Virus record (IMG/VR): IMGVR_UViG_3300029983_000007
Location: 186,001 to 250,000 of that record
Direction: 5' to 3' (one strand)
Length of the DNA stretch: 64,000 nt
Below are positions 1,689 to 31,885 of this stretch, one piece after another. Each line of letters starts with the position of its first letter. Position 1 is the first letter of the stretch. The notes beneath the pieces are model-generated. The model did no database searches. It saw nothing but the letters and a program-made list of their open reading frames with translations, and was not told the origin of the DNA. A program made the position numbers and the translations under genes.

Positions 1689-1853
1689 ATGAAGAAAATT
1701 AAAACTAAAGTAGCAATATCAATCGCAATAGATAAAGGAATGAATGAATATCTATCAGAAAACTTTGAAAATAAGTCAAAATATATTGAGCATTTGATAT
1801 ATAAAGATTTAGTTGAAAATAATATAATAGAAGAAAATAAATATAAAATGTAA
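1689..1853 (+). CDS. ribbon-helix-helix DNA-binding protein
   Basis: 54 aa MKKIKTKVAISIAIDKGMNEYLSENFENKSKYIEHLIYKDL...; its TAA overlaps the ATG of the endonuclease (TAATG). Confidence 0.65.
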   Translation: MKKIKTKVAISIAIDKGMNEYLSENFENKSKYIEHLIYKDLVENNIIEENKYKM

Positions 1854-3151
1854 TGGGTAAAAAATCAAAAAATGATGTTTTTATTAAAAAGGCAATAGAG
1901 GTACATGGTAATAAATATGACTATAGTTTAGTAGAATATAAACATAATCAAACAAATGTTGAAATTGTGTGTAATGATTGCGGATATAAGTTTCTAAGGA
2001 CTCCACATTATCATCTAAAAAGAAATATTAACAATGGTTGTAAAAATTGTTATTCATTAGCAAGAATATTAACTACTGATATCTTTATTGAAAAAGCAAT
2101 AGAGGTACATGGGAATAAATATGATTATTCTTTAGTTAAATATGAAAAATCGAAGACTAAAATTAAAATTATTTGTCCAATTCACGGAGAGTTTGAACAA
2201 ATACCGAATTCTCATTTATCTGGACATGGGTGCGACAAATGTGGAAGTTTTTCGACAACATATAATTTTATAATAACAGCAAAAGAAATTCATTGTGGTA
2301 AGTATGATTATTCTTTAGTTAATTATATAGATAATAAAACTAAAGTAAAAATTATTTGTCCAACTCATGGTATATTTGAACAAACTCCAGGTGGACATTT
2401 ATTTGGTAGAGGATGTGAAAAATGTGCATTTGATGGTAGAAGAATATTATTAGAAGATTTTATAAAAAGATCAAAAAAAATACATAATGATAAATACGAT
2501 TATTCTTTAGTTGAATATTGTTATTCAACGGAAAAAGTAAAAATTATTTGTCCAACTCATGGTATATTTGAACAAACTCCAAGTGGACATTTAGTAGGAA
2601 AAGGATGTTCAAAATGTAAATTTGATAAACATAGATTATCTACTGATGAATTTATAAAAAGATCAAAAAAAATACATGAAGATAAATATGATTATTCTTT
2701 AATTGATTATATAGATGTTCATAATAAAGTAAAAATTGTTTGTCCAACACATGGTATATTTGAACAAAAGGCAAATTCTCATTTACATAATCATGGATGT
2801 CCGTATTGTAATGAAAGCTTTGGAGAGAAAAAAATAAATAGTTTTTTAAAAAATAAAAAAATATCATACATCAGAGAATTCTCATTCGATGATTGTGTAG
2901 GTAAAAATAATGTTAAATTAAGATTTGATTTTTATCTTATTAAATATAATATTTGTATTGAATTTGATGGTAAACAACATTTTATTGCGCCTGAACAATG
3001 GGGAGGAGATGAATATTTATTACATTCTAAAAAATTAGATAAAATAAAAAATGAATATTGTAAAAATAACAATATTCATTTATTAAGGATAAAATATACA
3101 AAAATTAATTATATTGATATAATATTATCTAGACTTTTAAAACTTTTATAG
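1853..3151 (+). CDS. homing-type endonuclease with about six Zn-binding repeats and a C-terminal Vsr/PD-(D/E)xK-like domain
   Basis: Repeats HGNKYDYSLV-Y...KVKIICPTHGIFEQTP..HL.G.GC.KC; C-terminal RFDFYL..YNICIEFDGKQHF...DKIKNEYC. Confidence 0.8.
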   Translation: MGKKSKNDVFIKKAIEVHGNKYDYSLVEYKHNQTNVEIVCNDCGYKFLRTPHYHLKRNINNGCKNCYSLARILTTDIFIEKAIEVHGNKYDYSLVKYEKSKTKIKIICPIHGEFEQIPNSHLSGHGCDKCGSFSTTYNFIITAKEIHCGKYDYSLVNYIDNKTKVKIICPTHGIFEQTPGGHLFGRGCEKCAFDGRRILLEDFIKRSKKIHNDKYDYSLVEYCYSTEKVKIICPTHGIFEQTPSGHLVGKGCSKCKFDKHRLSTDEFIKRSKKIHEDKYDYSLIDYIDVHNKVKIVCPTHGIFEQKANSHLHNHGCPYCNESFGEKKINSFLKNKKISYIREFSFDDCVGKNNVKLRFDFYLIKYNICIEFDGKQHFIAPEQWGGDEYLLHSKKLDKIKNEYCKNNNIHLLRIKYTKINYIDIILSRLLKLL

Positions 3152-4968: not shown

Positions 4969-5452
4969 ATGAATGATAATAGATATTATTGTAAAAAAAA
5001 TTATTATAATAACTTCACAAAAGGATGTTATTATGATATTTGGATAGATCATAACAAGGATTCAAGTTATCTAATAAATTGGATAAATAATAATGTTTAT
5101 AATGTAAACACCATCTATGTTATATATGGATCTGAAATGGATAAAAATTTTAATAGCTATTTTATATTAGCTACTATTCATGATAGAAAAATAAAATTAA
5201 AAATATTAAATGAAGACTAAAAAATATTATTGTAAAAAATCATACGATAGCATTACTATAGGTAATTATTATGATTGTGGAACATCAACTAATGATTTAA
5301 TTTATGAAATTTCTGGAAAAAACAAAAAAGGTTTTGACTTTAATATGATATATGACAATAAATCTGATATTTATAAATATTTTAATGATTATTTAATATT
5401 AGCTATTATTCACGACAGAAAAATAAAACTAGAAAAAATTAGGTTATCTTAA
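4969..5452 (+). CDS. two paralogous small proteins with RKxKL-type tail (4969-5220, 5210-5452)
   Basis: Shared YYCKK...G.YYD...Y.ILA.IHDRKIKL. Confidence 0.75.
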
Positions 5453-5494
5453 TTTTTTTCATTATCTTAGTATTACAAAATATTAAATTTAAAA

Positions 5495-8400
5495 ATGGAT
5501 CAAAATATTAAAATAGGTGACAAATTTTTATGTAAAATGAATTATTGTTATATAATATTACAAAAATTTCATGAAGGTGTAGAATATGAAGTATATGATA
5601 TAAAAAAAATAGACAATGGCTGCGGTTTTTATTATTATTCCTATTCAATGATAGATAATGTTGACTTTAAGTTGTTATATGTGATTGAGTATGAATTAAA
5701 TAATATATTTTACTCTGGTAAAGAAATGAGAAAAATTAAATTAGAAAAATTGAATGAAAAATCATAATATTAAAATTGGTGATAAGTTATTATGTAAAGA
5801 TGATTGTTGGATTCCTAATATATGCTATCATAAAGGTAGAGAATATGAAGTATTTGATTTAAATAATTATTCGTACGTAATAATAGATAGAATTAACAAT
5901 GAGAGATTATTTATTGATGAATCAGAATTAAATTTAGTTTTTTATACTAATCAAGAAATGAGAAAAATTAAATTAGAAAAATTAAATGAAAAAATATAAT
6001 CTTAAAATAGGTGACATATTGTTATGTAAAAAAGATTATATTTATAGTAAAATCTCTTTTAGTATAAATAAAAAATATGAAATAATTCAAATTGTTTATA
6101 ACTCGCTTGAAAATAACAATAATTCGGTTTACTATTATGTATATGACGATAATAATAGTAGCATAGAAATTAGAAATGATGAAGATATGAATAGATATTT
6201 TTACACTAACCAAGAAGTCAGAAATATGAAATTAAAAAAAATTTATGAAGAATCAGAATCTTAATATTGGTGATAAATTATTATGTAAAAATTATTTAAA
6301 AACAGAATATTCTAGTTTAATAGAAGGTGATTATTATTTATTAGTTGATTTTGAGATATTTAATCATGAAGAATATTGTGATGTTAATTATACATTTTAT
6401 GATGAATATAATTATGATGATTATGTATATTATATAGATGATAATAATCATCACTCGTTTTCAATATTAGATGAAAAAGATTTATATAAGTATTTTTATA
6501 AAAAAAATGAGATTAGAAATATGAAATTAGAGAAATTAAAAAATGTTTAAGCAGAATCTTAAAATTGGTGATAAGTTGTTATGTAAGATAGATTATTGGA
6601 CAACAAAAATTTATTTTTTTGAAGGTAGAGAATATAATATATGTGACATAGAAATTGATTATGCAGATGAGAATGATTATGCATATTTTATAATGGATGA
6701 GAATAAAAACCGTGTGTTATTTATGATATTAGATGATTTAGATTCTTTTTTTTATACTAAGAAAGAAGTTAGAAATATCAAAATAAAAAAATTGAAAAAT
6801 GCATAATATTAAATTTAAAATAGGAGAAAGAATATTATGTAAATGCATTTTGCATCAAAACTTCGAATATTTTATGTTAAATAAATATTACACAATTTAT
6901 TCAATTGAAGTGTCAACCATAGGTAATTCATATTATCATATGACATTATAAAATAGCGATTTGCAGTCTATTTGTTCAGATGAATCTGTTTATAATTATT
7001 TTTATACTAACCAAGAAGTCAGGAATATGAAATTGAAAAAATTAAATGAAGAATCAAAATCTTAATAAAGGAGATAAAATATTATGTAAGAATGATATAC
7101 ATAATTCAAGAATTAATTTTACAAAAGGAATAGAATATTATATTGTAGCTATAGAACATAAAAATGATAATTATGATGATGATGGTAGTAATTATTACTA
7201 TTATATATCTGATGATAACTCTCAAATAATAGTTAGTGAAAATGAAAGATTATTTTATAATTATTTTTATACTAACCAAGAAGTCAGGAATATGAAATTA
7301 AAAAAAATAAATGATGATAAATAATTTTAAAGTTGGTGATAAGTTATTATGTAAAAAAGATTATATTACAAAATATTCAAGGTATAAAAAAAACAAATAT
7401 TATTATATTGAAGATATTGATGATCCTGTTTATGATTATGAAGAATATTCATATTATATAAATGATGATAATAATAATAATATTTATTTTTGGAAAGAAT
7501 ATGATTTATATGAATATTTTTATACTGCACAAGATGTACGAAAGCTTAAATTGAAAAATCTTTATGAAGAATCTGAATCTTAAAGTTGGTGACAAGTTAT
7601 TATGTAAAACTAACCTTTGTTCTTTGCTAGTTAATTACTTTAATAAGGATAAATATTATATTGTTTGGGATATTAAAAATTTTAAAGATTATTCTCAGAA
7701 TTGGACTTGGACTTGGTATTATATAATTGATGAAAGAGATTGTCCTTATTCTTTTAGTAAAATGGATGATGATTTATATGATATTTTTTATACTAAAAGT
7801 GAAATTAGAAAAATGAAATTGGAAAAATTGAAAAATGAAGAATATTAAAATAGGTGATAGATTATTATGTAAAAAAAGTCTATTTAACTCATCAATGACA
7901 TATTTTTATGCGAGAGAATATTACACTATTAATGAAATTCAATCAGAGAGTGATGGAGAATATTCATATTATATAATTGATAATAATGGCTATACTATGC
8001 CTTTTTCTTTTAATAATAACACTTTATATGCATATTTTTACACTAAACAAGAAATGAGACATATGAAATTAAAAAAAATTTATGAAGAAGCAGAATCTTA
8101 AAATAGGTGATAGATTATTATGTAAAGAAAGTTTTTTTGATTCAGATGATCCATATTTTCATGTAGATGATTATTGTATTATTTATTATATTCAAAAGTA
8201 TGTTACTAATGAATATTATTATTATATTTCAGATGAAAATAATAAACGATATCCTTTTAGATTTAGTCCTGATTTATTATTAACGTATTTTTATACTAAA
8301 CAAGAAATTAGAAATATGAAATTAAAAAAATTAGAAAAATATGAATAATTTTAATGACTATGATAACATATTATGTAAAAAAGATTTAATTGCTAATGGT

Positions 8401-8836
8401 CAGATATGTTTTATAAAAGATGAGTATTACATTTATCGTGAAAATTTAGGTAATGTTATTGATTTGTTTGGATGCTGTATTTATGGTGAAACTAGTGATA
8501 GATACCCATATTATTTAACTAAAAAAGATTTACTGGGTCATTTTTATACTAAAAATGAAATTAGAAAAATTAAATTGAATAAAATTTATGAAGAAGCAGA
8601 ATCTTAACACAGAAGATATATTATTGTGTAAAAAAGACTATTTAATATATTCTGTTGTTGTGTTTCATAAAAATAAATATTATTATAATAGATTTAATAA
8701 ATCTCATGTTTGTTGTACTATATGTGATGATGATTCATTTGAACATTTGCTTAGTTATGACGAGGTATCTGAGCATTTTTACACTAAACAAGAAGTTAGG
8801 AAAATTAAATTGAAAAAATTGAATGAATGTCAGTAA
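5495..8836 (+). repeat. tandem array of 13 paralogous ~81-101 aa genes (12 intact, 1 broken)
   Basis: Starts at 5495, 5754, 5986, 6245, 6543, 6799, 7046, 7311, 7564, 7835, 8082, 8341, 8588; N-terminal (K/N)(I/V)GD(K/R)(L/I)LCK is conserved (degenerate in the last two) and so is C-terminal FY(T/S/K)xxE/DxRxxKLxK[LI]; middles are divergent; successive genes overlap. Confidence 0.9.
6799..7065 (+). pseudogene. array member with an in-frame TAA at 6949-6951
   Basis: MHNIKFKIGERILCK...YYHMTL*NSDLQSICSDESVYNYFYTNQEVRNMKLKKLNEESKS*; both family ends are in one frame. Confidence 0.85.
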
Positions 8837-9237: not shown

Positions 9238-10323
9238 ATGAAAAAAGTAAGAAGCATTTTATTTAAAATGGAATTAAAAGGCAACGGAGTTGTTAATTTT
9301 GATAGTAATGATCAAAAATATCTTTGGAATGAAAATACAAAAGGTACTGGTCAAGAAAGAGTTAATCACAATAATGTCAGCTTTGCTAAAAAACGTTGGT
9401 ATAAAAATGATGACGGTACAATTGATAAAAAATTGATTGTTTCAAGTAACTGTCTTAGGTATTCAATATTTTCTGATGATACTTTATTTCAATCACCAAA
9501 TATAATTAATAATAGTTTTTTACTAAATTCAATGATTGCCACTCCAGGTTTAATTTGTCGTGGATATATGTTTGCAGAAAAAGATCCATCAAAATCATAT
9601 AAACGATCTAGTGTATTGAATATTACAGATGCTGAACAAATAAATAATTCGATATCTACATTAGAAACTTTTAGTCGTAGTGGAGAAAAAATTGTTGATG
9701 AAAACAAATCTGACACAAGTTTCTTCAAAAAAGAAACAGTAGGTAATATTGTATATGAAGCGATAGGTAGTATTGATATGATGCAAATTCAATTTGTTAG
9801 TTGTGATCAACTATTTGATAGGATGGCATTAAATCCAGATATATTTCCAGATTATAAGAAATTTCTTTCTACTAAATTACCAAATTTCAATTCTGAACTT
9901 AGTTATTATCAAATTAAAGGTAGTGCTATTGAACTTCCTGAATATGGTTTTATGTTATCAAATGAAAATGTGATATTTTTAGTAAAGGATTTATTCACTA
10001 AAATGTTAAACTTAAAAATTCGAAAAGCATCTGCATTTGCTGAAGTTTCTTCTATCAAATATAAAATTGTTAATGATCCATTTGAAGATAAATTTAGTGA
10101 TGAAGACGGCTGGTTGGAATTGAATAAAAACGTTATTGAAACATTGAATTTTGATAATGAGGACTTCTATGAGAAATATGATTTTGATGCTGCTAAATCT
10201 TTAAGATTAGAATTAGAAGATGCTGCAAAAGCCAGAAAAGATGCTAATAAAGATGCTGCAAATTTAAAAAAAGAAGAAGCAAAATCTAAAAAAGAAAAAA
10301 AAGTAGAAGAAACTGAAGAATAA
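9238..10323 (+). CDS. cas7: CRISPR-associated Cas7-like backbone protein (divergent)
   Basis: N-terminal strand-G..N, VSSNCLRY (ISxxxlR-like), RGY...KRSS.L.ITDA, then ETFSR...DTSFF..E..G..Y...G.ID, the Cas7 RAMP pattern; first gene of an operon with cas6 beside an array; charged helical C-tail. Confidence 0.75.
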   Translation: MKKVRSILFKMELKGNGVVNFDSNDQKYLWNENTKGTGQERVNHNNVSFAKKRWYKNDDGTIDKKLIVSSNCLRYSIFSDDTLFQSPNIINNSFLLNSMIATPGLICRGYMFAEKDPSKSYKRSSVLNITDAEQINNSISTLETFSRSGEKIVDENKSDTSFFKKETVGNIVYEAIGSIDMMQIQFVSCDQLFDRMALNPDIFPDYKKFLSTKLPNFNSELSYYQIKGSAIELPEYGFMLSNENVIFLVKDLFTKMLNLKIRKASAFAEVSSIKYKIVNDPFEDKFSDEDGWLELNKNVIETLNFDNEDFYEKYDFDAAKSLRLELEDAAKARKDANKDAANLKKEEAKSKKEKKVEETEE

Positions 10324-10334
10324 TAAAAAATAGC

Positions 10335-11210
10335 ATGAAATATTTAAAGTTAAGTTTCAGAAATGCTGGCTTCTATACTGTTAATAAAAATACTAAAGAC
10401 TTTATGTTTGATATAAATGGTCAGCACAAAAGAAAAGATGTATTATATGGTAAACAGCAAAAAGTTAGTATTTCTGTTAATCAGATAAGTAATATGTTAC
10501 ATGTTTTAATGGGCGAAAGACCAAGTGCAACATATCGTGATACTTTAATAAATCCGATAAATTCTATTTTTCAAACTGCTAATAAATCATACATTAAGAT
10601 TTATACCTCATTTTTTATAAATAAAAATAAAAATGTGAAATATTATCCTTCTGAAAGTGTTACTATTAGAAAATCAGTTTGGAATAGTTTTAATCCTGCA
10701 CCAGATTTAGTTTATTGGAAAAGAGTTGAGAATTTTTTAACTAATGATATAGATAATTCATTATATCTTGAATTTGTAAAAATATTAAATTCTATATTAG
10801 AATATGATGTATTAAAAAAAACATTTTTAGATGTTATTGATGAATTGATAAAAAATCATAAAAATCATAGTTTAATTAACACTTTTAAATTAAAACTTAA
10901 AGAATCAATGAAAGTTCCAATGATTAAAATATTGGATGGTGAATATGATGGCACTATGAATAAAAATAGTAGAACAATGTTGACTACTAATTTTGGTGTT
11001 GATAAGATTACTAGATTGAGTGGTTCTATTATAATACCAGTTGAAGAATATGATATTGAAAAAATTAGGAATTCAAAAGGTTCTGTTACTTTATTAGACG
11101 GTGGAGTAGTGTGGATTGAAGATTTGATAAATGATTATGAATTTGGAGTTAGAGAACTTGAAGAATATTTACCTATTAATAAATTAGAAGAATATGAGAA
11201 TAATATTTGA
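10335..11210 (+). CDS. cas5: Cas5-like protein with large central helical insertion
   Basis: N-terminal MKYLKLSFRNAGFY...QISNMLHVLMGERP resembles the Cas5 first strand and 'sal.Gll.ailG' helix; C-terminal LSGSIIIP...VTLLDGG.V.I resembles the Cas5 RRM end; lies between cas7 and cas6. Confidence 0.55.
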   Translation: MKYLKLSFRNAGFYTVNKNTKDFMFDINGQHKRKDVLYGKQQKVSISVNQISNMLHVLMGERPSATYRDTLINPINSIFQTANKSYIKIYTSFFINKNKNVKYYPSESVTIRKSVWNSFNPAPDLVYWKRVENFLTNDIDNSLYLEFVKILNSILEYDVLKKTFLDVIDELIKNHKNHSLINTFKLKLKESMKVPMIKILDGEYDGTMNKNSRTMLTTNFGVDKITRLSGSIIIPVEEYDIEKIRNSKGSVTLLDGGVVWIEDLINDYEFGVRELEEYLPINKLEEYENNI

Positions 11211-11907
11211 ATTTACAGAAAATACATCATTAGTACCAATTAATAATCAGTCATATATGAATTATTATATTCAAAAATGTCTTGGCGACAATAATAAATA
11301 TCATGATTCTAAGAATGATTATTCTATTTCTTCATTATATGGAGGTAAGTTAACAGATGATGAATTACATTTATCTTTCAAAAATGGAGGCATTATTGTT
11401 GTAACTTCAAAAAATGAAGAATTCTTGAATACTTTGATATGTGGTGTGATGTCTAATAAAGAATTAAAATGGGGAATGAAATTTGATAAAATTAATTTCA
11501 TTTCTGAAATTTTTAGAAATGGCTGGAATCATTTTGCTACATTATCTCCTTTTATTATTAAAAAATATATTGATAAAAAGAATTATACCTTTTCAACTTT
11601 GAATGATTCTGATTTTGTAGATACTGTAAAAAAACATATTATAAAAAAATTGAGTAAAATTTATAATGGTATAAATTTAACAGATTTTGATGTTAAAATA
11701 ATCAATCATCCTTCTCATAAAGTAAAAAAAATAATGGTGAAGAATGTTAAAAATGAAGCTAATCAATGTCAAGTCAGTATATTCTGTTCATCAGATGTAG
11801 CAGAAAAAATTTACAATTTAGGTATAGGTCAATCAACTGGTTCAGGATTTGGAACAATTTATAAAACAGAAAATAGAGATAAATATAATTTAGAATTGAA
11901 AAAATGA
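11194..11907 (+). CDS. cas6: CRISPR-associated endoribonuclease Cas6
   Basis: YHD..N.YSIS.L.GG, TLSPFII, C-terminal Gly-rich loop GIGQSTGSGFGTI. Confidence 0.95.
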   Translation: MRIIFEFTENTSLVPINNQSYMNYYIQKCLGDNNKYHDSKNDYSISSLYGGKLTDDELHLSFKNGGIIVVTSKNEEFLNTLICGVMSNKELKWGMKFDKINFISEIFRNGWNHFATLSPFIIKKYIDKKNYTFSTLNDSDFVDTVKKHIIKKLSKIYNGINLTDFDVKIINHPSHKVKKIMVKNVKNEANQCQVSIFCSSDVAEKIYNLGIGQSTGSGFGTIYKTENRDKYNLELKK

Positions 11908-11999
11908 TTAATTTTAATCTAAATGATATTGTTACAAGTGATTTTTTAAATTATAAATCACTTGTAATGTTATGTATATCTGTCAATTATGAATAATGA
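11908..11999 (+). promoter_or_regulatory. CRISPR leader with a 13-bp inverted repeat
   Basis: AT-rich non-coding stretch next to the first perfect repeat; TTACAAGTGATTT (11932-11944) / AAATCACTTGTAA (11955-11967). Confidence 0.65.
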
Positions 12000-13222
12000 A
12001 CTGATACTTATATAATTCCGCAAGGGAATCACAACAATGTGGAATGTAACTGGAATTAATGTTTTACTGATACTTATATAATTCCGCAAGGGAATCACAA
12101 CGAATATGCAGAATATTCAAAAAAGAGAATAACTGATACTTATATAATTCCGCAAGGGAATCACAACACAACAGATAATGGAAATAAATTACAAGTTACT
12201 GATACTTATATAATTCCGCAAGGGAATCACAACTCTAGCAGTGCAATAGAGCCAGCCCAATCAACTGATACTTATATAATTCCGCAAGGGAATCACAACT
12301 ATAAATAACAAAGAACTAATGAAAAACTCACTGATACTTATATAATTCCGCAAGGGAATCACAACTCAGCCTGAATTTTACCTTTACCCATCATTACTGA
12401 TACTTATATAATTCCGCAAGGGAATCACAACTAAAAATAACCATCTAATAATTGAGACATAACTGATACTTATATAATTCCGCAAGGGAATCACAACTGA
12501 TGTGATGATATACAGAAAAAAAAATAACTGATACTTATATAATTCCGCAAGGGAATCACAACATCATTCTATTGATTGTTATATTTCTTCTAACTGATAC
12601 TTATATAATTCCGCAAGGGAATCACAACATCTTTTCTATATAATATATTTTCATATTTACTGATACTTATATAATTCCGCAAGGGAATCACAACATCAAA
12701 AAATGTAATTCTATATTTATAATTACTGATACTTATATAATTCCGCAAGGGAATCACAACATATATTTTCTTTAAACTGCTCAATGATGAACTGATACTT
12801 ATATAATTCCGCAAGGGAATCACAACATTGCGTACGACTCATATAATTCAACACAAACTGATACTTATATAATTCCGCAAGGGAATCACAACAGCCCATA
12901 TGTACACCCTATTTAGTGGTACACTGATACTTATATAATTCCGCAAGGGAATCACAACTGCGCTTGAGTTGTTGAATTTGCTGCAAAAACTGATACTTAT
13001 ATAATTCCGCAAGGGAATCACAACTTTAATGCTTTTGCAAATTTTGGCATAATAACTGATACTTATATAATTCCGCAAGGGAATCACAACATTGCAGTTT
13101 GATACATTTCAAAATAAGAAACTGATACTTATATAATTCCTTGATGGAATCACAATATTGAAAAAATAGAAAAGTTGATACAATAAACTAATAATTATAT
13201 CATTCCGTAAAGGAATTTAAAA
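12000..13222 (+). CRISPR. CRISPR array: 17 identical plus 2 degenerate 36-nt repeats, 18 spacers
   Basis: Repeat ACTGATACTTATATAATTCCGCAAGGGAATCACAAC at 12000, 12066, 12132, 12198, 12264, 12330, 12396, 12462, 12527, 12593, 12659, 12725, 12791, 12857, 12923, 12989, 13055; degenerate copies at 13121 and 13187; spacers all different, 30 nt (one 29 nt); internal hairpin ATTCC-GCAAG-GGAAT. Confidence 0.99.
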
Positions 13223-13234
13223 TATTAAAAATTA

Positions 13235-13290: not shown

Positions 13291-15564
13291 ATGATAGAAA
13301 CATTAGTGTCTAATAGTAATGGAGTATCTTTAAAAACTCACTCGTTAGCTGTTCAAAAAATAGCAGTTATAATGGCTGAAAGATTAGGATTACCAATTGA
13401 TATACAAAATGCTATATCAAAAGCTGCTTTGTTACATGACATTGGAAAATCTTATATTCCTTTTCAAAATTATGTATCAAAAAAAGTTGTATCTGAAGAG
13501 TTTACTAATAATAAAATATTTCATCATGAAATTTCATGGGCTATACTTAGATATCTTATGAATATTGATAAAGATTATAATTATAGTATTTTATATTCTA
13601 TATATTGGCATCATTCCAGAGATATGAGTAATAAAAATAAAGAATATGCATCATCGATATTAGAAAAATTAACAGATGATGATAAACAAAGAGTATTAAC
13701 TGTGTATAATGAATTAACTGGTGAAAATAAAGTTTTATCAGATCTTGATGTTAATATCATGAATGATAAAATTCCTGATTATTATATAAATAAAGATGAT
13801 AAAATTTGTTCATTGAATATTATTGTTATGTCTTGTGTAGTTTCTTCAGATAGATATGTATCATCAATAAATATAGACCAGAATAAAATTTTAATTGATG
13901 ATAATTATTGTAATGAAATTGTTGATTCTATAGATTATTCTCCTACAAAAAATTATATAACACCAAAAAATTATGATATTGATCGTTTTAATTATCAATT
14001 ATCTTGTGCTGGTGATATAAATAGTAATCAAACTTCTGAATTGAAAGCACCTGCTGGTTATGGTAAAACTATTAATGGCTTACTTGCTTGGATTAAATCT
14101 GGGAATAGAAAATTAATTTGGGTTTGTCCAAGAAATACAATAGCGGAAACTCTATTTGATGGTGTTAAAAATGAACTTAATGCATTAAGTATCAATAATA
14201 TTAGTGTTGAATTGTTTCTTACTGGAGAAAGACGTGATATTTATAATGAAAACAATAATATAGATTTCACATCGGATATTATAATCACTAATATTGATAA
14301 TTTTTTGACTCCTACCATTAATAATTTTGTTAGAGATAGAATGTACTCATTATTATCAAGTTATGTTATTTTTGATGAATTTCATGAATTAGTTGCGTCT
14401 GAGCCGTACTTTGCTTGTTTTGTTAATATCATGAATGTTAGACATAGATATACAAATAGTAAAACATTACTGATGAGTGCGACCCCTACAATGATGACAA
14501 ATTTATGGGATAACTCAATTAAAGGAACTGCTATTTTACCAAATGAAACTAATCATTATAATGCTGCTCATTCTAAGAAATTTAGAATAAATTTCTTAGA
14601 TGATATAACTTTAGTAAATCCTCAACTAAATAGTTTATTTATAACAAATTCAATAAAATCTTCTCAAACAAAAACTATTGATGACGATTATTCAGTTATA
14701 GCGCATAGTAAATATATGATTGATGACAGAAAGTGTATAATTGATAGTATATTTGATATGTATGGTAAAAATAAGAAGATTCAAAATAAATTAGATGTTA
14801 TATCTGCGCCATTGATTCAAGCTGCTATGGATTTATCTTTTGGTATTATGACTGAAATTCCTAAATCTCCAGAAGATACATTTCAAAGATTGGGTAGACT
14901 TAATAGATGGGGAGAATATGATGTAGTTGATTATAATATTTTAGTTAATATTAATGATAAAAAAATAAATTTAAGTGAATTAGCTTCAATTAATCTTACT
15001 TATGACATAAAATTAAATAAATTGTGGATTGATTATTTAAAAAATAATATTATTGATAAATATGAATATACATTAGATGAATTGTACATTAAATACAATG
15101 TTTTTAATTCAATGTATAAAAAAGAAATAAATGAATATATTAATGATAGATACATTAAAAGTAGAGAATCATTATCTAAATTATTTCCAAGAAAATATAT
15201 AAATAAAGATACAAAAAAAATAGTATCATCAGGTTCTAAACTTAGGGACAATGGATCAAATAATATTTATTGTATATATAAAATATATAATACTGATGAG
15301 TATACAGATGTATTTAGTATTGATTCTAATGGTTCAGATATGGATAAACATGAAGATAATACTACTCAAACTAATCAGATTCGTTCTATTAAGAAATTGT
15401 TAACTGATAGTAGATTTGAATATAATAAACATAGATTATTAACAGGTAACAAATTTACTAGTAATAAATTATTTGAATCTGCAAAAAATCCTAAGACTCC
15501 ATATATTTGTTACCATAAAGAATATCATCCAAAATTAGGGCTTATATCAATTTATTTATTATAA
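13291..15564 (+). CDS. cas3: CRISPR-associated HD nuclease/SF2 helicase Cas3
   Basis: HD domain: LKTH, ALLHDIGK, HHEIS, WHHS, SSDR; helicase: APAGYGKT, DEFH, SAT, QAAMDLS, QRLGRLNRWG. Confidence 0.95.
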   Translation: MIETLVSNSNGVSLKTHSLAVQKIAVIMAERLGLPIDIQNAISKAALLHDIGKSYIPFQNYVSKKVVSEEFTNNKIFHHEISWAILRYLMNIDKDYNYSILYSIYWHHSRDMSNKNKEYASSILEKLTDDDKQRVLTVYNELTGENKVLSDLDVNIMNDKIPDYYINKDDKICSLNIIVMSCVVSSDRYVSSINIDQNKILIDDNYCNEIVDSIDYSPTKNYITPKNYDIDRFNYQLSCAGDINSNQTSELKAPAGYGKTINGLLAWIKSGNRKLIWVCPRNTIAETLFDGVKNELNALSINNISVELFLTGERRDIYNENNNIDFTSDIIITNIDNFLTPTINNFVRDRMYSLLSSYVIFDEFHELVASEPYFACFVNIMNVRHRYTNSKTLLMSATPTMMTNLWDNSIKGTAILPNETNHYNAAHSKKFRINFLDDITLVNPQLNSLFITNSIKSSQTKTIDDDYSVIAHSKYMIDDRKCIIDSIFDMYGKNKKIQNKLDVISAPLIQAAMDLSFGIMTEIPKSPEDTFQRLGRLNRWGEYDVVDYNILVNINDKKINLSELASINLTYDIKLNKLWIDYLKNNIIDKYEYTLDELYIKYNVFNSMYKKEINEYINDRYIKSRESLSKLFPRKYINKDTKKIVSSGSKLRDNGSNNIYCIYKIYNTDEYTDVFSIDSNGSDMDKHEDNTTQTNQIRSIKKLLTDSRFEYNKHRLLTGNKFTSNKLFESAKNPKTPYICYHKEYHPKLGLISIYLL

Positions 15565-15956: not shown

Positions 15957-17921
15957 ATGACAAAAAGTAATAATATCAATAATGTTAAACATCCCATTAT
16001 TAGAACAAAAAGTTTACGTAATGGTTCTGTAACAAAAAACAACAAGTCATATATAAGAACATATGATTTAAGTCGTTATAGTAATGATCAGTTAGTGAAT
16101 GCATTATATAGCAAAAAGTGGAACACAAACAGAAGAAGATTTATTGCTGATATATACTATTTATTAGATGAAAGGATTGCAGCAGGAAAATGTACTAAAT
16201 ATGAAATTGACAATTTGAAATATTTAGCTAATATAAAAAAGCATAATATAGTAAAATCTGTCAATAATAATAGTAGAACAACTACCACAAATACTACAAT
16301 TCCAGTCTCTAATAGTTTAGTTAGTTTAAAATATCGTATCAATAGTTTATCAAATGAAATATTTCGTATTACTGGTGCTAGATTTAAAAAGCTAAACAGG
16401 ACTGATGATGTATCAGATAAAGCACATGTATTTTATGATCAGATTTTTGCTTCATTACATTGTATACATAATATGTTGATGGCAAAAGATAATTATAAAC
16501 ATAGTAGATATAATATGTTAACTGCAGAAACTCAAGCAGGAAAAACAGGAGTTGTTCGTAATGTAATATTTTTATTGGAAACTTATCCTAAATTGAGAGA
16601 ATATCTTGGTTTAGAATTTGGAGGTAGCGTAATAATAACTCCAATGTGTGACAATGCAAATAAAGAACAATTAAAAACTGATATTTCACATGGCGAATGC
16701 AGACAAGACAATCAAAAACTTTTAAAGTCAAAAGGAATCATGCATAATCCAGATATGCTTAGTTGGTCAAGAAATAATCAATATGGAAACTTGCATGACT
16801 GTATTATATTTGTAGATGAATCTCACTTAGCATCAGGTGTTAGTGGTGCTATGAATAGTTATCTTCAAAAAAATAATATAAATTTGAATGGCTCTACTAA
16901 TTTATCTAAAAATAACATTTTTTTATTCACAATATCAGCTACTCCATATGAAGAGCATGTTGGTAATTTGTTATTTAAAAAAAAGAATACAATAGAGTTA
17001 GCTCATGGACCTAATTATAAAGGATTGGATTATTTTTTGAAAAACAATTTTTTTAGACAATCATTTGATTTGTCAACTACTGAAGGTGAGAATCATTTTA
17101 AGAATGAAGTAGAAAGTTTCAATCATAAAATTGGTTATTATATTGTCAGAATAAATATTAGTACAGATACTGATAATTTGATACCAGAAGGATTTTCAAC
17201 TTTAACATATTTTGAGAAAGATAAAGAAGTTATTAATGAAACATTGAGAAAAATACCTGATACACCTACTCTTATATTTGTAAAAGAGAAAATGAAACAA
17301 TCATATCAATTAGATAAACAAAATATTGTAATGATGTTTGATAGATCAGTTGTTCATGATTCTGATTATAGAACAAGTTTTATTGTACAAAGTTTTGCAG
17401 GTAGATTTTGTGGATATCATAATTATAATGCTATTATATACACAGAAATAAATGATGTGAAACTTCATTTAGATTATTTAAAAAATAAAAATCATGTACC
17501 ACACTGTAAGCGTGTTAATAATGATAAGAAATTTTCATTCAAGGAAAAAAATAAATCACAGCAGTCATCATATAGTAATAAAAATGACTTATCATATGCA
17601 AATAACTTTACATTAAAGATTGGATATAAAACACAGAATGATGGTTATATAACATTAAACAATAATATCATAACAATATATTTAGATAATAAGAGGAATT
17701 TAGTATTATCTAAAAAATCAAAAGTTGAAACAGAATTTCTTTCTTCTTATATTGAAGACTATGTTGTTTGCTCAGATATTAAAACACCTTGTAATTCATT
17801 TTTAGATGCTAAGAATGCACTTGAATCGTATTGTAAGATAGTATCATCAAAAACAAAAATTGATGATGTGAAAACAAAAAATGGTAAAAAATTCATTGAA
17901 TTATTGGAGTTTAATTTTTGA
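15957..17921 (+). CDS. SF2 helicase-like ATPase (DExH), reminiscent of Z1-domain/restriction-associated helicases
   Basis: AETQAGKTG, IFVDESH, ISATP, QSFAGRFCGY; basic N-terminal extension; promoter TTTG(15903)-N20-TACATTTG. Confidence 0.65.
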   Translation: MTKSNNINNVKHPIIRTKSLRNGSVTKNNKSYIRTYDLSRYSNDQLVNALYSKKWNTNRRRFIADIYYLLDERIAAGKCTKYEIDNLKYLANIKKHNIVKSVNNNSRTTTTNTTIPVSNSLVSLKYRINSLSNEIFRITGARFKKLNRTDDVSDKAHVFYDQIFASLHCIHNMLMAKDNYKHSRYNMLTAETQAGKTGVVRNVIFLLETYPKLREYLGLEFGGSVIITPMCDNANKEQLKTDISHGECRQDNQKLLKSKGIMHNPDMLSWSRNNQYGNLHDCIIFVDESHLASGVSGAMNSYLQKNNINLNGSTNLSKNNIFLFTISATPYEEHVGNLLFKKKNTIELAHGPNYKGLDYFLKNNFFRQSFDLSTTEGENHFKNEVESFNHKIGYYIVRINISTDTDNLIPEGFSTLTYFEKDKEVINETLRKIPDTPTLIFVKEKMKQSYQLDKQNIVMMFDRSVVHDSDYRTSFIVQSFAGRFCGYHNYNAIIYTEINDVKLHLDYLKNKNHVPHCKRVNNDKKFSFKEKNKSQQSSYSNKNDLSYANNFTLKIGYKTQNDGYITLNNNIITIYLDNKRNLVLSKKSKVETEFLSSYIEDYVVCSDIKTPCNSFLDAKNALESYCKIVSSKTKIDDVKTKNGKKFIELLEFNF

Positions 17922-31513: not shown

Positions 31514-31584
31514 TGCTCTATGTTGTAATGATAGCAATCAGGAATTTGGATCCTGCAGATTAGGTTTGAGTCCTAATAGAGCAA
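31514..31584 (+). tRNA. trnQ: tRNA-Gln(UUG), atypical
   Basis: Acceptor TGCTCTA/TAGAGCA, anticodon arm CAGGA-ATTTGGA-TCCTG, T arm TTAGG-TTTGAGT-CCTAA; A19/U56 compensatory pair; no encoded CCA. Confidence 0.8.
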
Positions 31585-31598
31585 CAACACAATGTCAC

Positions 31599-31683
31599 TG
31601 CCTTGTGATGGAATTGGTTAAACATGTCAGTCTTTGAAACTGATGCTCATATGAGCTTGTGGGTTCGAATCCCACTAAGGCGA
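31599..31683 (+). tRNA. class II-like (long variable arm) tRNA with Gln anticodon UUG
   Basis: Acceptor TGCCTTG/TAAGGCG, D loop AATTGGTTAAA, anticodon arm TCAGT-CTTTGAA-ACTGA, variable hairpin GCTC-ATAT-GAGC, T arm GTGGG-TTCGAAT-CCCAC. Confidence 0.85.
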
Positions 31684-31693
31684 CAAATTATAT

Positions 31694-31766
31694 TGTTCAT
31701 TAGCGCAATTGGTAGAGCGTCAGATTCTGGATCTGAAGGTTGAAAGTCCGAATCTTTCATGAATAA
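31694..31766 (+). tRNA. trnQ: tRNA-Gln(CUG)
   Basis: Acceptor TGTTCAT/ATGAATA, D arm GCGC-AATTGGTA-GAGC, anticodon arm TCAGA-TTCTGGA-TCTGA, T arm GAAAG-TCCGAAT-CTTTC. Confidence 0.8.
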
Positions 31767-31775
31767 CAAATACAT

Positions 31776-31847
31776 TCTCATATTGTATAACGGCTATTAC
31801 ATTTGTTTTTGGAACAAATAATCTAGGTTCAACTCCTAGTGTGAGAA
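31776..31847 (+). tRNA. trnQ: tRNA-Gln(UUG)
   Basis: Acceptor TCTCATA/TGTGAGA, anticodon arm TTTGT-TTTTGGA-ACAAA, T arm CTAGG-TTCAACT-CCTAG. Confidence 0.8.
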
Positions 31848-31885
31848 CAAAAAACTCTGAAATTTAAATTTCAGAGTTTTTTTTA
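31848..31885. terminator. bidirectional terminator after the tRNA cluster
   Basis: AAAAACTCTGAAATTT/AAATTTCAGAGTTTTT inverted repeat. Confidence 0.75.

Follow-up and report, generated by a model that had tools for sequence, protein, structure and literature searches.

Encoded on the + strand at positions 10335–11210 of a 64,000-nt stretch of DNA (hereafter the window; positions 186,001 to 250,000 of the IMG/VR virus record IMGVR_UViG_3300029983_000007) is a 291-amino-acid (aa) protein, with an ATG start, that is probably Cas5 in a minimal type I CRISPR (short palindromic repeats, clustered and regularly interspaced) interference module. The module, carried by an element treated here as a huge phage from peat, comprises Cas7, Cas5, Cas6, a CRISPR array and Cas3, has neither Cas8 nor Cas11, and would be a distant sister of type I-F2 (also termed I-Fv), with a helical insert in Cas5 proposed to read the protospacer-adjacent motif (PAM). 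Carrying this reading are the modelled fold and its insert, the conserved gene neighbourhood, the homology of Cas7 and Cas3 to their I-F2 counterparts and a conserved module in which Cas8 is absent.

Fold of the Cas5 protein

The AlphaFold2 model of the protein was built on an alignment of 27 homologous sequences and has a mean predicted local distance difference test score (pLDDT) of 79.6. The N-terminal part (aa 1–115, window 10335–10679) contains strands 2–14, 23–32 and 86–114 and helices 48–58 and 76–83; 26 columns are at least 80% conserved, and a conserved helix motif, I-S-N-M-L-H-V-L-x-G-E-R-P, spans aa 46–63. Following it is the insert (aa 116–217, window 10680–10985), in which five helices (128–135, 142–155, 164–175, 179–190 and 194–200; pLDDT of 87–94 over aa 141–190) lie between two flexible linkers (116–124 and 209–218; pLDDT below 50). 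The C-terminal part (aa 218–291, window 10986–11207) is formed by a β-hairpin (strands 218–236), a helix (238–246), two strands (251–266) and an acidic tail, with G230, L254 and G257 invariant. As single RRM domains superpose on model residues 1–2 to about 264–275, the two parts represent one RRM split by the insert. Model and superposition thus bear out a preliminary description of this DNA, which had proposed RRM halves flanking a helical stretch of about 100 aa and whose four quoted peptides all occur in the translation of the open reading frame (ORF).

Ranked first and second in a Foldseek search of the PDB were 9g44_B, the Cas5 of a type I-F2 complex (E = 1.3e-4, probability of 0.99), and 5o6u_F, the Shewanella Cas5fv (E = 1.9e-4), both with collinear, full-length alignments. 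The top 16 matches of the VIA fold search were all Cas5 chains, and in two independent fold searches Cas5fv/Cas5f2 came first, above about 15 other Cas5 subunits. Template modelling (TM) scores of the fold matches were moderate (0.29–0.33), because the match rests on the RRM core. Clusters matched in the AlphaFold database (AFDB) included ‘CRISPR-associated protein Cas5’ (E = 5e-5) and ‘Cas5fv helical domain-containing protein’; the one match among the BFVD viral structures was an uncharacterised phage protein (E = 3.6e-3), and the model of the protein stored in the ESM Atlas was poor (pLDDT of 0.37), with meaningless matches. The ranking is nevertheless consistent and identifies the protein as a Cas5, closest to Cas5fv.

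At 291 aa the protein exceeds the ordinary Cas5 subunits among the fold matches (Cas5e, Cas5a, Cas5b and Cas5c; 195–250 aa), which have no helical insert and are partnered with a Cas8 large subunit, but it is shorter than Cas5fv (331–337 aa), so that its initial characterisation as oversized holds for the former comparison and fails for the latter. Nor does it reach the size of a Cas8 (above 400 aa), and no Cas8 chain was among the fold matches.

In Cas5fv (Cas5f2) of the Shewanella putrefaciens CN-32 type I-F2 system (PDB 5O6U, 5O7H and 9G44), the RRM is likewise interrupted by an all-helical domain, and the gene is similarly located between a Cas7fv-type cas7 and cas6 in a system without Cas8 and Cas11. 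In canonical Cas5fv this domain (PF20158) spans aa 110–266 of 337. A model of canonical Cas5fv, of low confidence (pLDDT of 53) and used for the order of secondary structure only, gives a strand, six helices, a hairpin, a helix and strands. The phage Cas5 follows the same order, with strand 106–114, five helices, hairpin 218–236, a helix and strands, and in these models the insert appears to interrupt the RRM where the helical domain does so in Cas5fv. Present in all 140 diverse members of the phage Cas5 family (length of 87–152 aa, median of 101), the insert is ancestral to that family.

Conserved neighbours and their relation to type I-F2

Upstream of cas5 is cas7 (9238–10323, +), encoding a Cas7fv-like backbone subunit of 361 aa. 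Its match with the NCBIfam model cas_Cas7fv (NF040577; E = 9.3e-31) scores 107 bits, under the 200-bit equivalog cut-off, which makes it a homologue of Cas7fv rather than an equivalog. PADLOC matches are to Cas7fv (7.4e-24) and Cas7f (3.5e-19), PDB 5o6u_C (Cas7fv) is matched over aa 4–274 (E = 8e-18), and all genes that tblastn returned for Cas7 are annotated as cas7fv and lie on plasmids of Acinetobacter and Legionella, with 27–30% identity. As the Cas7fv matches end at aa 274–277, the K/E-rich, probably helical C-terminal tail (aa about 300–361, window 10138–10323) lies beyond the Cas7fv-like part; as pure speculation, it might help to handle the non-target strand without Cas11.

The 757-aa Cas3 (13291–15564, +) combines an HD nuclease with a superfamily 2 helicase, matching Pfam HD, DEAD, ResIII, Cas3-like_C_2 and Cas3_HD as well as TIGR01596 (cas3_HD, over the cut-off). 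Its best PADLOC match is Cas3fv (E = 1.3e-61), followed by Cas3b (5e-33). With Cas2-3 of I-Fv plasmids it shares 23–25% identity, the match beginning after their first 110 aa or so; the Cas2 domain of I-Fv Cas2-3 has no match, and Cas3 here begins with the HD domain. The 237-aa Cas6 (11194–11907, +) is a CRISPR RNA (crRNA) endoribonuclease of the Cas6/Cas6b type, not Cas6f: it matches TIGR01877 (cas_cas6, E = 8e-21, over the cut-off), Pfam Cas_Cas6_C (2e-10) and PADLOC Cas6b (1e-35), with Cas6/Cas6b profiles the only ones matched, and canonical Cas6f gave no tblastn match.

The three genes are tightly packed, with 11 nt between the cas7 stop and the cas5 start and an overlap of 17 nt between the end of cas5 and the start of cas6. 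Type I-F2 loci have the order cas1f, cas2-3, cas7fv, cas5fv, cas6f, and the phage cas5 therefore occupies exactly the cas5fv slot. Across more than 30 related loci, the conserved module of four genes includes no Cas8 or Cas11 gene. In the 330-kb record (330,208 bp, linear; CheckV completeness estimate of 46%), no match was found for Cas8f or Cas8b, Cas8 proteins being very divergent, or for Cas1 or Cas2.

Searched with a profile of the Cas5 family, 50%-identity clusters yield 502 matching representatives at E ≤ 1e-3, of which 206 remain at E ≤ 1e-30; these matches and the conserved neighbours argue that cas5 is not a chance ORF. All sampled members are annotated as unnamed or ‘hypothetical’. 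Relatives are located on 24 IMG/VR contigs, many of them 100–362 kb long, and among about 185,000 species genomes only three contigs from metagenome-assembled genomes (MAGs) carry one. In every related locus with enough sequence, Cas3, Cas7, Cas5 and Cas6 occur together, ordered cas7-cas5-cas6-array-cas3 or cas3-cas7-cas5-cas6, with no further large co-conserved gene in the related loci. The four-gene module is kept down to 22–40% protein identity on many large phage contigs, and among the four proteins Cas5 evolves fastest (for example, its identity is down to 40% in a case where that of Cas6 is still 85%).

Cas6 types b, e and f are all found with the same core. One distant relative, on a 325-kb contig binned to a Terrimicrobiaceae MAG (L040, 4482–9396), encodes a Cas3fv-like protein, a Cas7fv-like protein and a 298-aa member of the Cas5 family, followed by a Cas6e-type Cas6, which points to repeated exchange of Cas6 around a stable Cas8-less core. 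The distribution suggests a clade that has swapped Cas6 and repeat type several times, has dropped its adaptation genes and lives mainly in huge phages.

Because Cas7 and Cas3 are homologous to the I-F2 proteins, the lineage is best placed as a distant sister of I-F2, with which it shares the Cas3 helicase-nuclease, the Cas7 backbone, the cas7-cas5-cas6 order and the lack of a large or small subunit. It differs in encoding a Cas6b-type Cas6 (Cas6e-type in the Terrimicrobiaceae-binned relative) where I-F2 has Cas6f, in repeats that are 36 nt long and end in GGAATCACAAC, those of I-F2 being 28 nt long with TTAGAAA at the end, and in having a Cas3 without a Cas2 domain and no detected Cas1 in place of the Cas2-3 fusion and Cas1f. 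As the fusion, Cas6f, Cas1f and 28-nt repeats are all missing, we regard the locus as related to I-F2 and not as a member of it.

Compact type I systems are also carried by other phages, namely the type I-F system of ICP1 and the I-C variant of huge phages, and like the present locus most huge-phage systems are without adaptation genes (PMC7162821). The ICP1 system keeps Cas8f (Csy1), Cas1 and Cas2-3 (PMC10161043), and the I-C variant is without Cas6 and uses a Cas5d-like protein (PMC7162821); unlike the present locus, neither has a Cas5 with a helical insert. As in other phage-encoded systems, the module is presumably used against competing elements or host defences. In the literature covered, which leaves out at least one relevant survey of viral CRISPR systems and so a possible prior mention, we found no phage-borne I-F2-like module with a Cas6b-type Cas6.

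Role of the helical insert

In type I systems other than I-F2, PAM reading and strand wedging are tasks of Cas8. With no Cas8 in the module of more than 30 loci and no match to Cas8f or Cas8b in the record, a Cas8-replacing role is the natural reading of the insert, which by analogy with I-F2 most likely reads the PAM in its place. In I-F2 the helical domain stretches over the PAM duplex, where a GG PAM is read by Gln113 of the entry linker together with Lys253 of the last helix (PMC6546366; PMC12956352). In the phage Cas5 family, position 113 (K113, in the entry linker just before the insert) is K or R in 97% of members and position 193, at the start of the last helix of the insert, in 67%; that these are counterparts of Gln113 and Lys253 is suggested by analogy only.

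Modelled on I-F2, interference would begin with cleavage of the precursor crRNA by Cas6 at the base of the repeat hairpin, Cas6 then remaining on the 3′ hairpin. The conserved 5′ handle (...AUCACAAC) would be bound and capped by Cas5 and the 30-nt spacer coated by about six copies of Cas7. Extending across the duplex beside the protospacer, the helical insert of Cas5 would sense the PAM and wedge the strands open, and Cas3, recruited through Cas7 and Cas5, would degrade the displaced strand.

Searches with spacers yielded no PAM. The spacers of the window array have no self-target in the 330-kb record and the array has no credible match among GenBank phages; five spacers were without an exact match in IMG/VR; spacer 4 returned only the array itself from metagenomes and nothing from species genomes; and 178 spacers from related arrays have no target in their own genome or in any fetched locus.

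The insert might instead serve as a docking surface for Cas3, as a stand-in for Cas11 on the non-target strand or as a shield against anti-CRISPR proteins, with PAM discrimination relaxed or provided by other residues of Cas5 or Cas7. Direct contacts of I-F2 Cas3 with Cas5 and Cas7.1 (PMC12956352) would fit such a role, as would the poor conservation and roughly neutral net charge of the insert and the failure of the spacer searches to give a PAM; a system without an adaptation module of its own may also require less discrimination between self and non-self. Neutral charge is, however, not evidence against DNA reading, since the canonical PAM-reading domain of Cas5fv is itself neutral to acidic (net −6 to +4). 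Furthermore, every characterised type I Cascade that targets DNA needs a PAM sensor and strand wedge, and when Cas8 is missing no subunit other than Cas5 sits at the PAM end of the complex (PMC6546366). Each spacer is also flanked by a repeat ending in ...CACAAC, and some discrimination against the phage’s own array is therefore still needed. Taken together, these points make a role other than PAM reading improbable.

Several results nevertheless weigh against a Cas5fv-like Cas5 whose insert reads the PAM. The protein matches no family in Pfam, NCBIfam or PADLOC at E ≤ 1, the NCBIfam Cas5fv model included, and phmmer and hmmsearch searches of the PDB gave no match. Aligned whole with Cas5fv by hhalign, it reaches a probability below 2%; the sole weak collinear profile similarity is in the N-terminal RRM part (aa 4–109 with 3–108, P = 0.04; a second alignment pairs aa 39–62 with 42–65), and the C-terminal part gives 0.1. 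For the insert alone, no sequence similarity to the helical domain of Cas5fv could be detected (hhalign P = 0.62), PF20158 is matched by none of 143 family members, and the insert is shorter, with five helices in about 100 aa where Cas5fv has six in about 157. Within the protein, conservation is lowest in the insert (top-residue frequency of 0.31, compared with 0.50–0.52 in the RRM parts), with W128 its only position conserved at 80% or more, and this low conservation could also reflect weak constraint. None of the collections searched gave a protospacer from which to derive a PAM, and as the record covers about 46% of the phage genome, a Cas8 gene at a distance may conceivably lie elsewhere.

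The dissimilarity of the two inserts bears most directly on their origin. An insert gained independently of the Cas5fv helical domain, as a convergent replacement of Cas8 in a module otherwise related to I-F2, retains some probability, as neither sequences nor profiles reveal any similarity between the two inserts, which are also unlike in size and in their number of helices; independent gain would also accord with Cas5 being the fastest-evolving of the four proteins and with the reshuffling of modules, in which three Cas6 types accompany one core. Yet the operon’s own Cas7 and Cas3 are clearly homologous to those of I-F2, the insert apparently interrupts the RRM at the same point, and the best structural matches are Cas5fv and Cas5f2, above every other Cas5. 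The insert is ancestral to the family, and a single origin is also more parsimonious than two separate gains at one site. On these grounds, and given the gene order, a common Cas8-less ancestor is the simpler reading; convergence is less economical, and we consider it unlikely.

The preliminary description had gone further and proposed a convergent solution in a non-I-F lineage. Of its interpretation, the Cas5 with a central helical domain and no Cas8 to be found stands, whereas convergence outside type I-F is not supported, given the Cas7fv-homologous Cas7, the Cas3 that best matches Cas3fv, the I-Fv gene order and the Cas5fv/Cas5f2 matches at the top of the fold searches.

The principle of a Cas5 helical domain replacing Cas8 is already known, which limits the surprise of the locus. 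So far, however, I-F2 has been treated as the lone odd case in which Cas5 and Cas7 assume the roles of Cas8 and Cas11, and the present family suggests that the Cas8-less design belongs to a much wider clade. A bolder proposal, to which we give rather less than even weight, is that the family marks a subtype-level, so far unnamed Cas8-less branch of type I, found almost wholly in huge phages, whose Cas5 bears a fast-evolving helical PAM-sensing module unrelated to the Cas5fv domain, or diverged from it beyond recognition, and may read a different PAM by a different geometry. If so, takeover of the Cas8 role by Cas5 would be a recurrent or an ancient and widespread design rather than an oddity of Shewanella and Acinetobacter, and the branch would provide a very compact effector gene set; at about 1650 aa in total, the four proteins are attractive for compact type I tools. 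Comparison of two very different helical inserts at one site of Cas5 could indicate what PAM reading without Cas8 truly requires. Since the Cas5 subunit escapes current Cas5 profiles, annotation will probably list such loci as incomplete, and a profile for the family would improve CRISPR typing in viral metagenomes.

CRISPR array and phage context

Between cas6 and cas3 is the CRISPR array (12000–13156, +), composed of 18 repeats of 36 nt and 17 spacers of 29–30 nt. Seventeen of the repeats are identical and the last, distal one is degenerate; with the degenerate repeat at the opposite end, the leader is presumed to be the AT-rich segment from the cas6 stop to the first repeat (11908–11999, +). 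The 3′ half of the repeat forms a 5-bp hairpin (positions 16–20 with 26–30) followed by CACAAC. Repeats of related loci are also 36 nt long with a conserved 3′ half ending in GGAATCACAAC, and in a comparison of nine related repeats the hairpin keeps 91% pairing and shows one compensatory change of a pair (C-G to U-A).

The intact array, its identical repeats, the conserved hairpin and the presence of identical genes in several independent peat samples are signs of a functional state. They bear on whether the locus is a decaying or non-functional remnant and cas5 a degenerate gene with a meaningless low-complexity helical stretch, as the missing adaptation genes, the lack of spacer targets in the searches and the absence of any listed RNA run might be taken to indicate. 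Such decay is very improbable: besides the 17 identical repeats, the ORFs are intact, the HD, helicase and Cas6 profiles are matched, the module is conserved across many large phage contigs at 22–40% protein identity, and the insert is confidently modelled as packed helices.

About 35 nt past the last degenerate repeat, at 13190–13225, is an extra degenerate repeat-like remnant (…TCATTCCGTAAAGGAATTTAAAAT), which suggests an older, decayed end of the array. Short contigs from three peat samples (runs X1, X5 and X8) join the spacer-repeat segment at 12099–12130 to flanks unlike those in the window, although the cas genes are identical in these samples; the array may vary within the phage population, or the contigs may come from a related array that shares the repeat.

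Just 3′ of cas3 is an ORF of 654 aa (15957–17921, +) with a Walker-A-like motif (AGKTG) and a DESH motif, and without a match in Pfam, NCBIfam, PADLOC or PHROGs. Considered as a conserved extra large subunit, it was rejected: only the closest phage group also has it (70% identity at the same position in L004), and it is unrelated to the large ORF adjoining the module in another related locus (L007) and is missing from the remaining ones.

The assignment of the element to a huge peat phage follows from the genes in the window for an HNH homing endonuclease, a phage-type DNA helicase and a gp32-like single-stranded DNA-binding protein, and from the peat metagenomes in which the locus occurs (at least 13 runs). 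Across several independent peat samples the cas genes are identical in DNA contigs, and the 291-aa Cas5 is also present, unchanged, on a 711-kb contig. The phage DNA has a G+C content of about 24%. Reading TAG or TGA as sense barely altered ORF coverage, and the standard genetic code was retained.

Immediately upstream of cas7 (4969–8836, +) are at least 14 tandem, slightly overlapping small paralogous ORFs of 80–101 aa, which in an alignment share motifs resembling NLKIGDKLLCKKDY at the N terminus and YFYTKQEVRKIKLKKL at the C terminus. A comparable run of about 15 ORFs of 83–107 aa is located upstream of cas7 in L004, and the ORFs are possibly a diversified anti-defence or regulatory family tied to the cas operon. 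Further upstream, the HNH/homing-endonuclease ORF (1853–3151, +; phrog_559, E = 1e-93) holds 2.6 copies of a 192-bp tandem repeat (2267–2768), representing an internally repeated domain. Downstream, four tRNA-Gln genes lie in tandem at 31514–31848 (+), three with anticodon UUG and one with CUG, and one of the four is 86 nt long.
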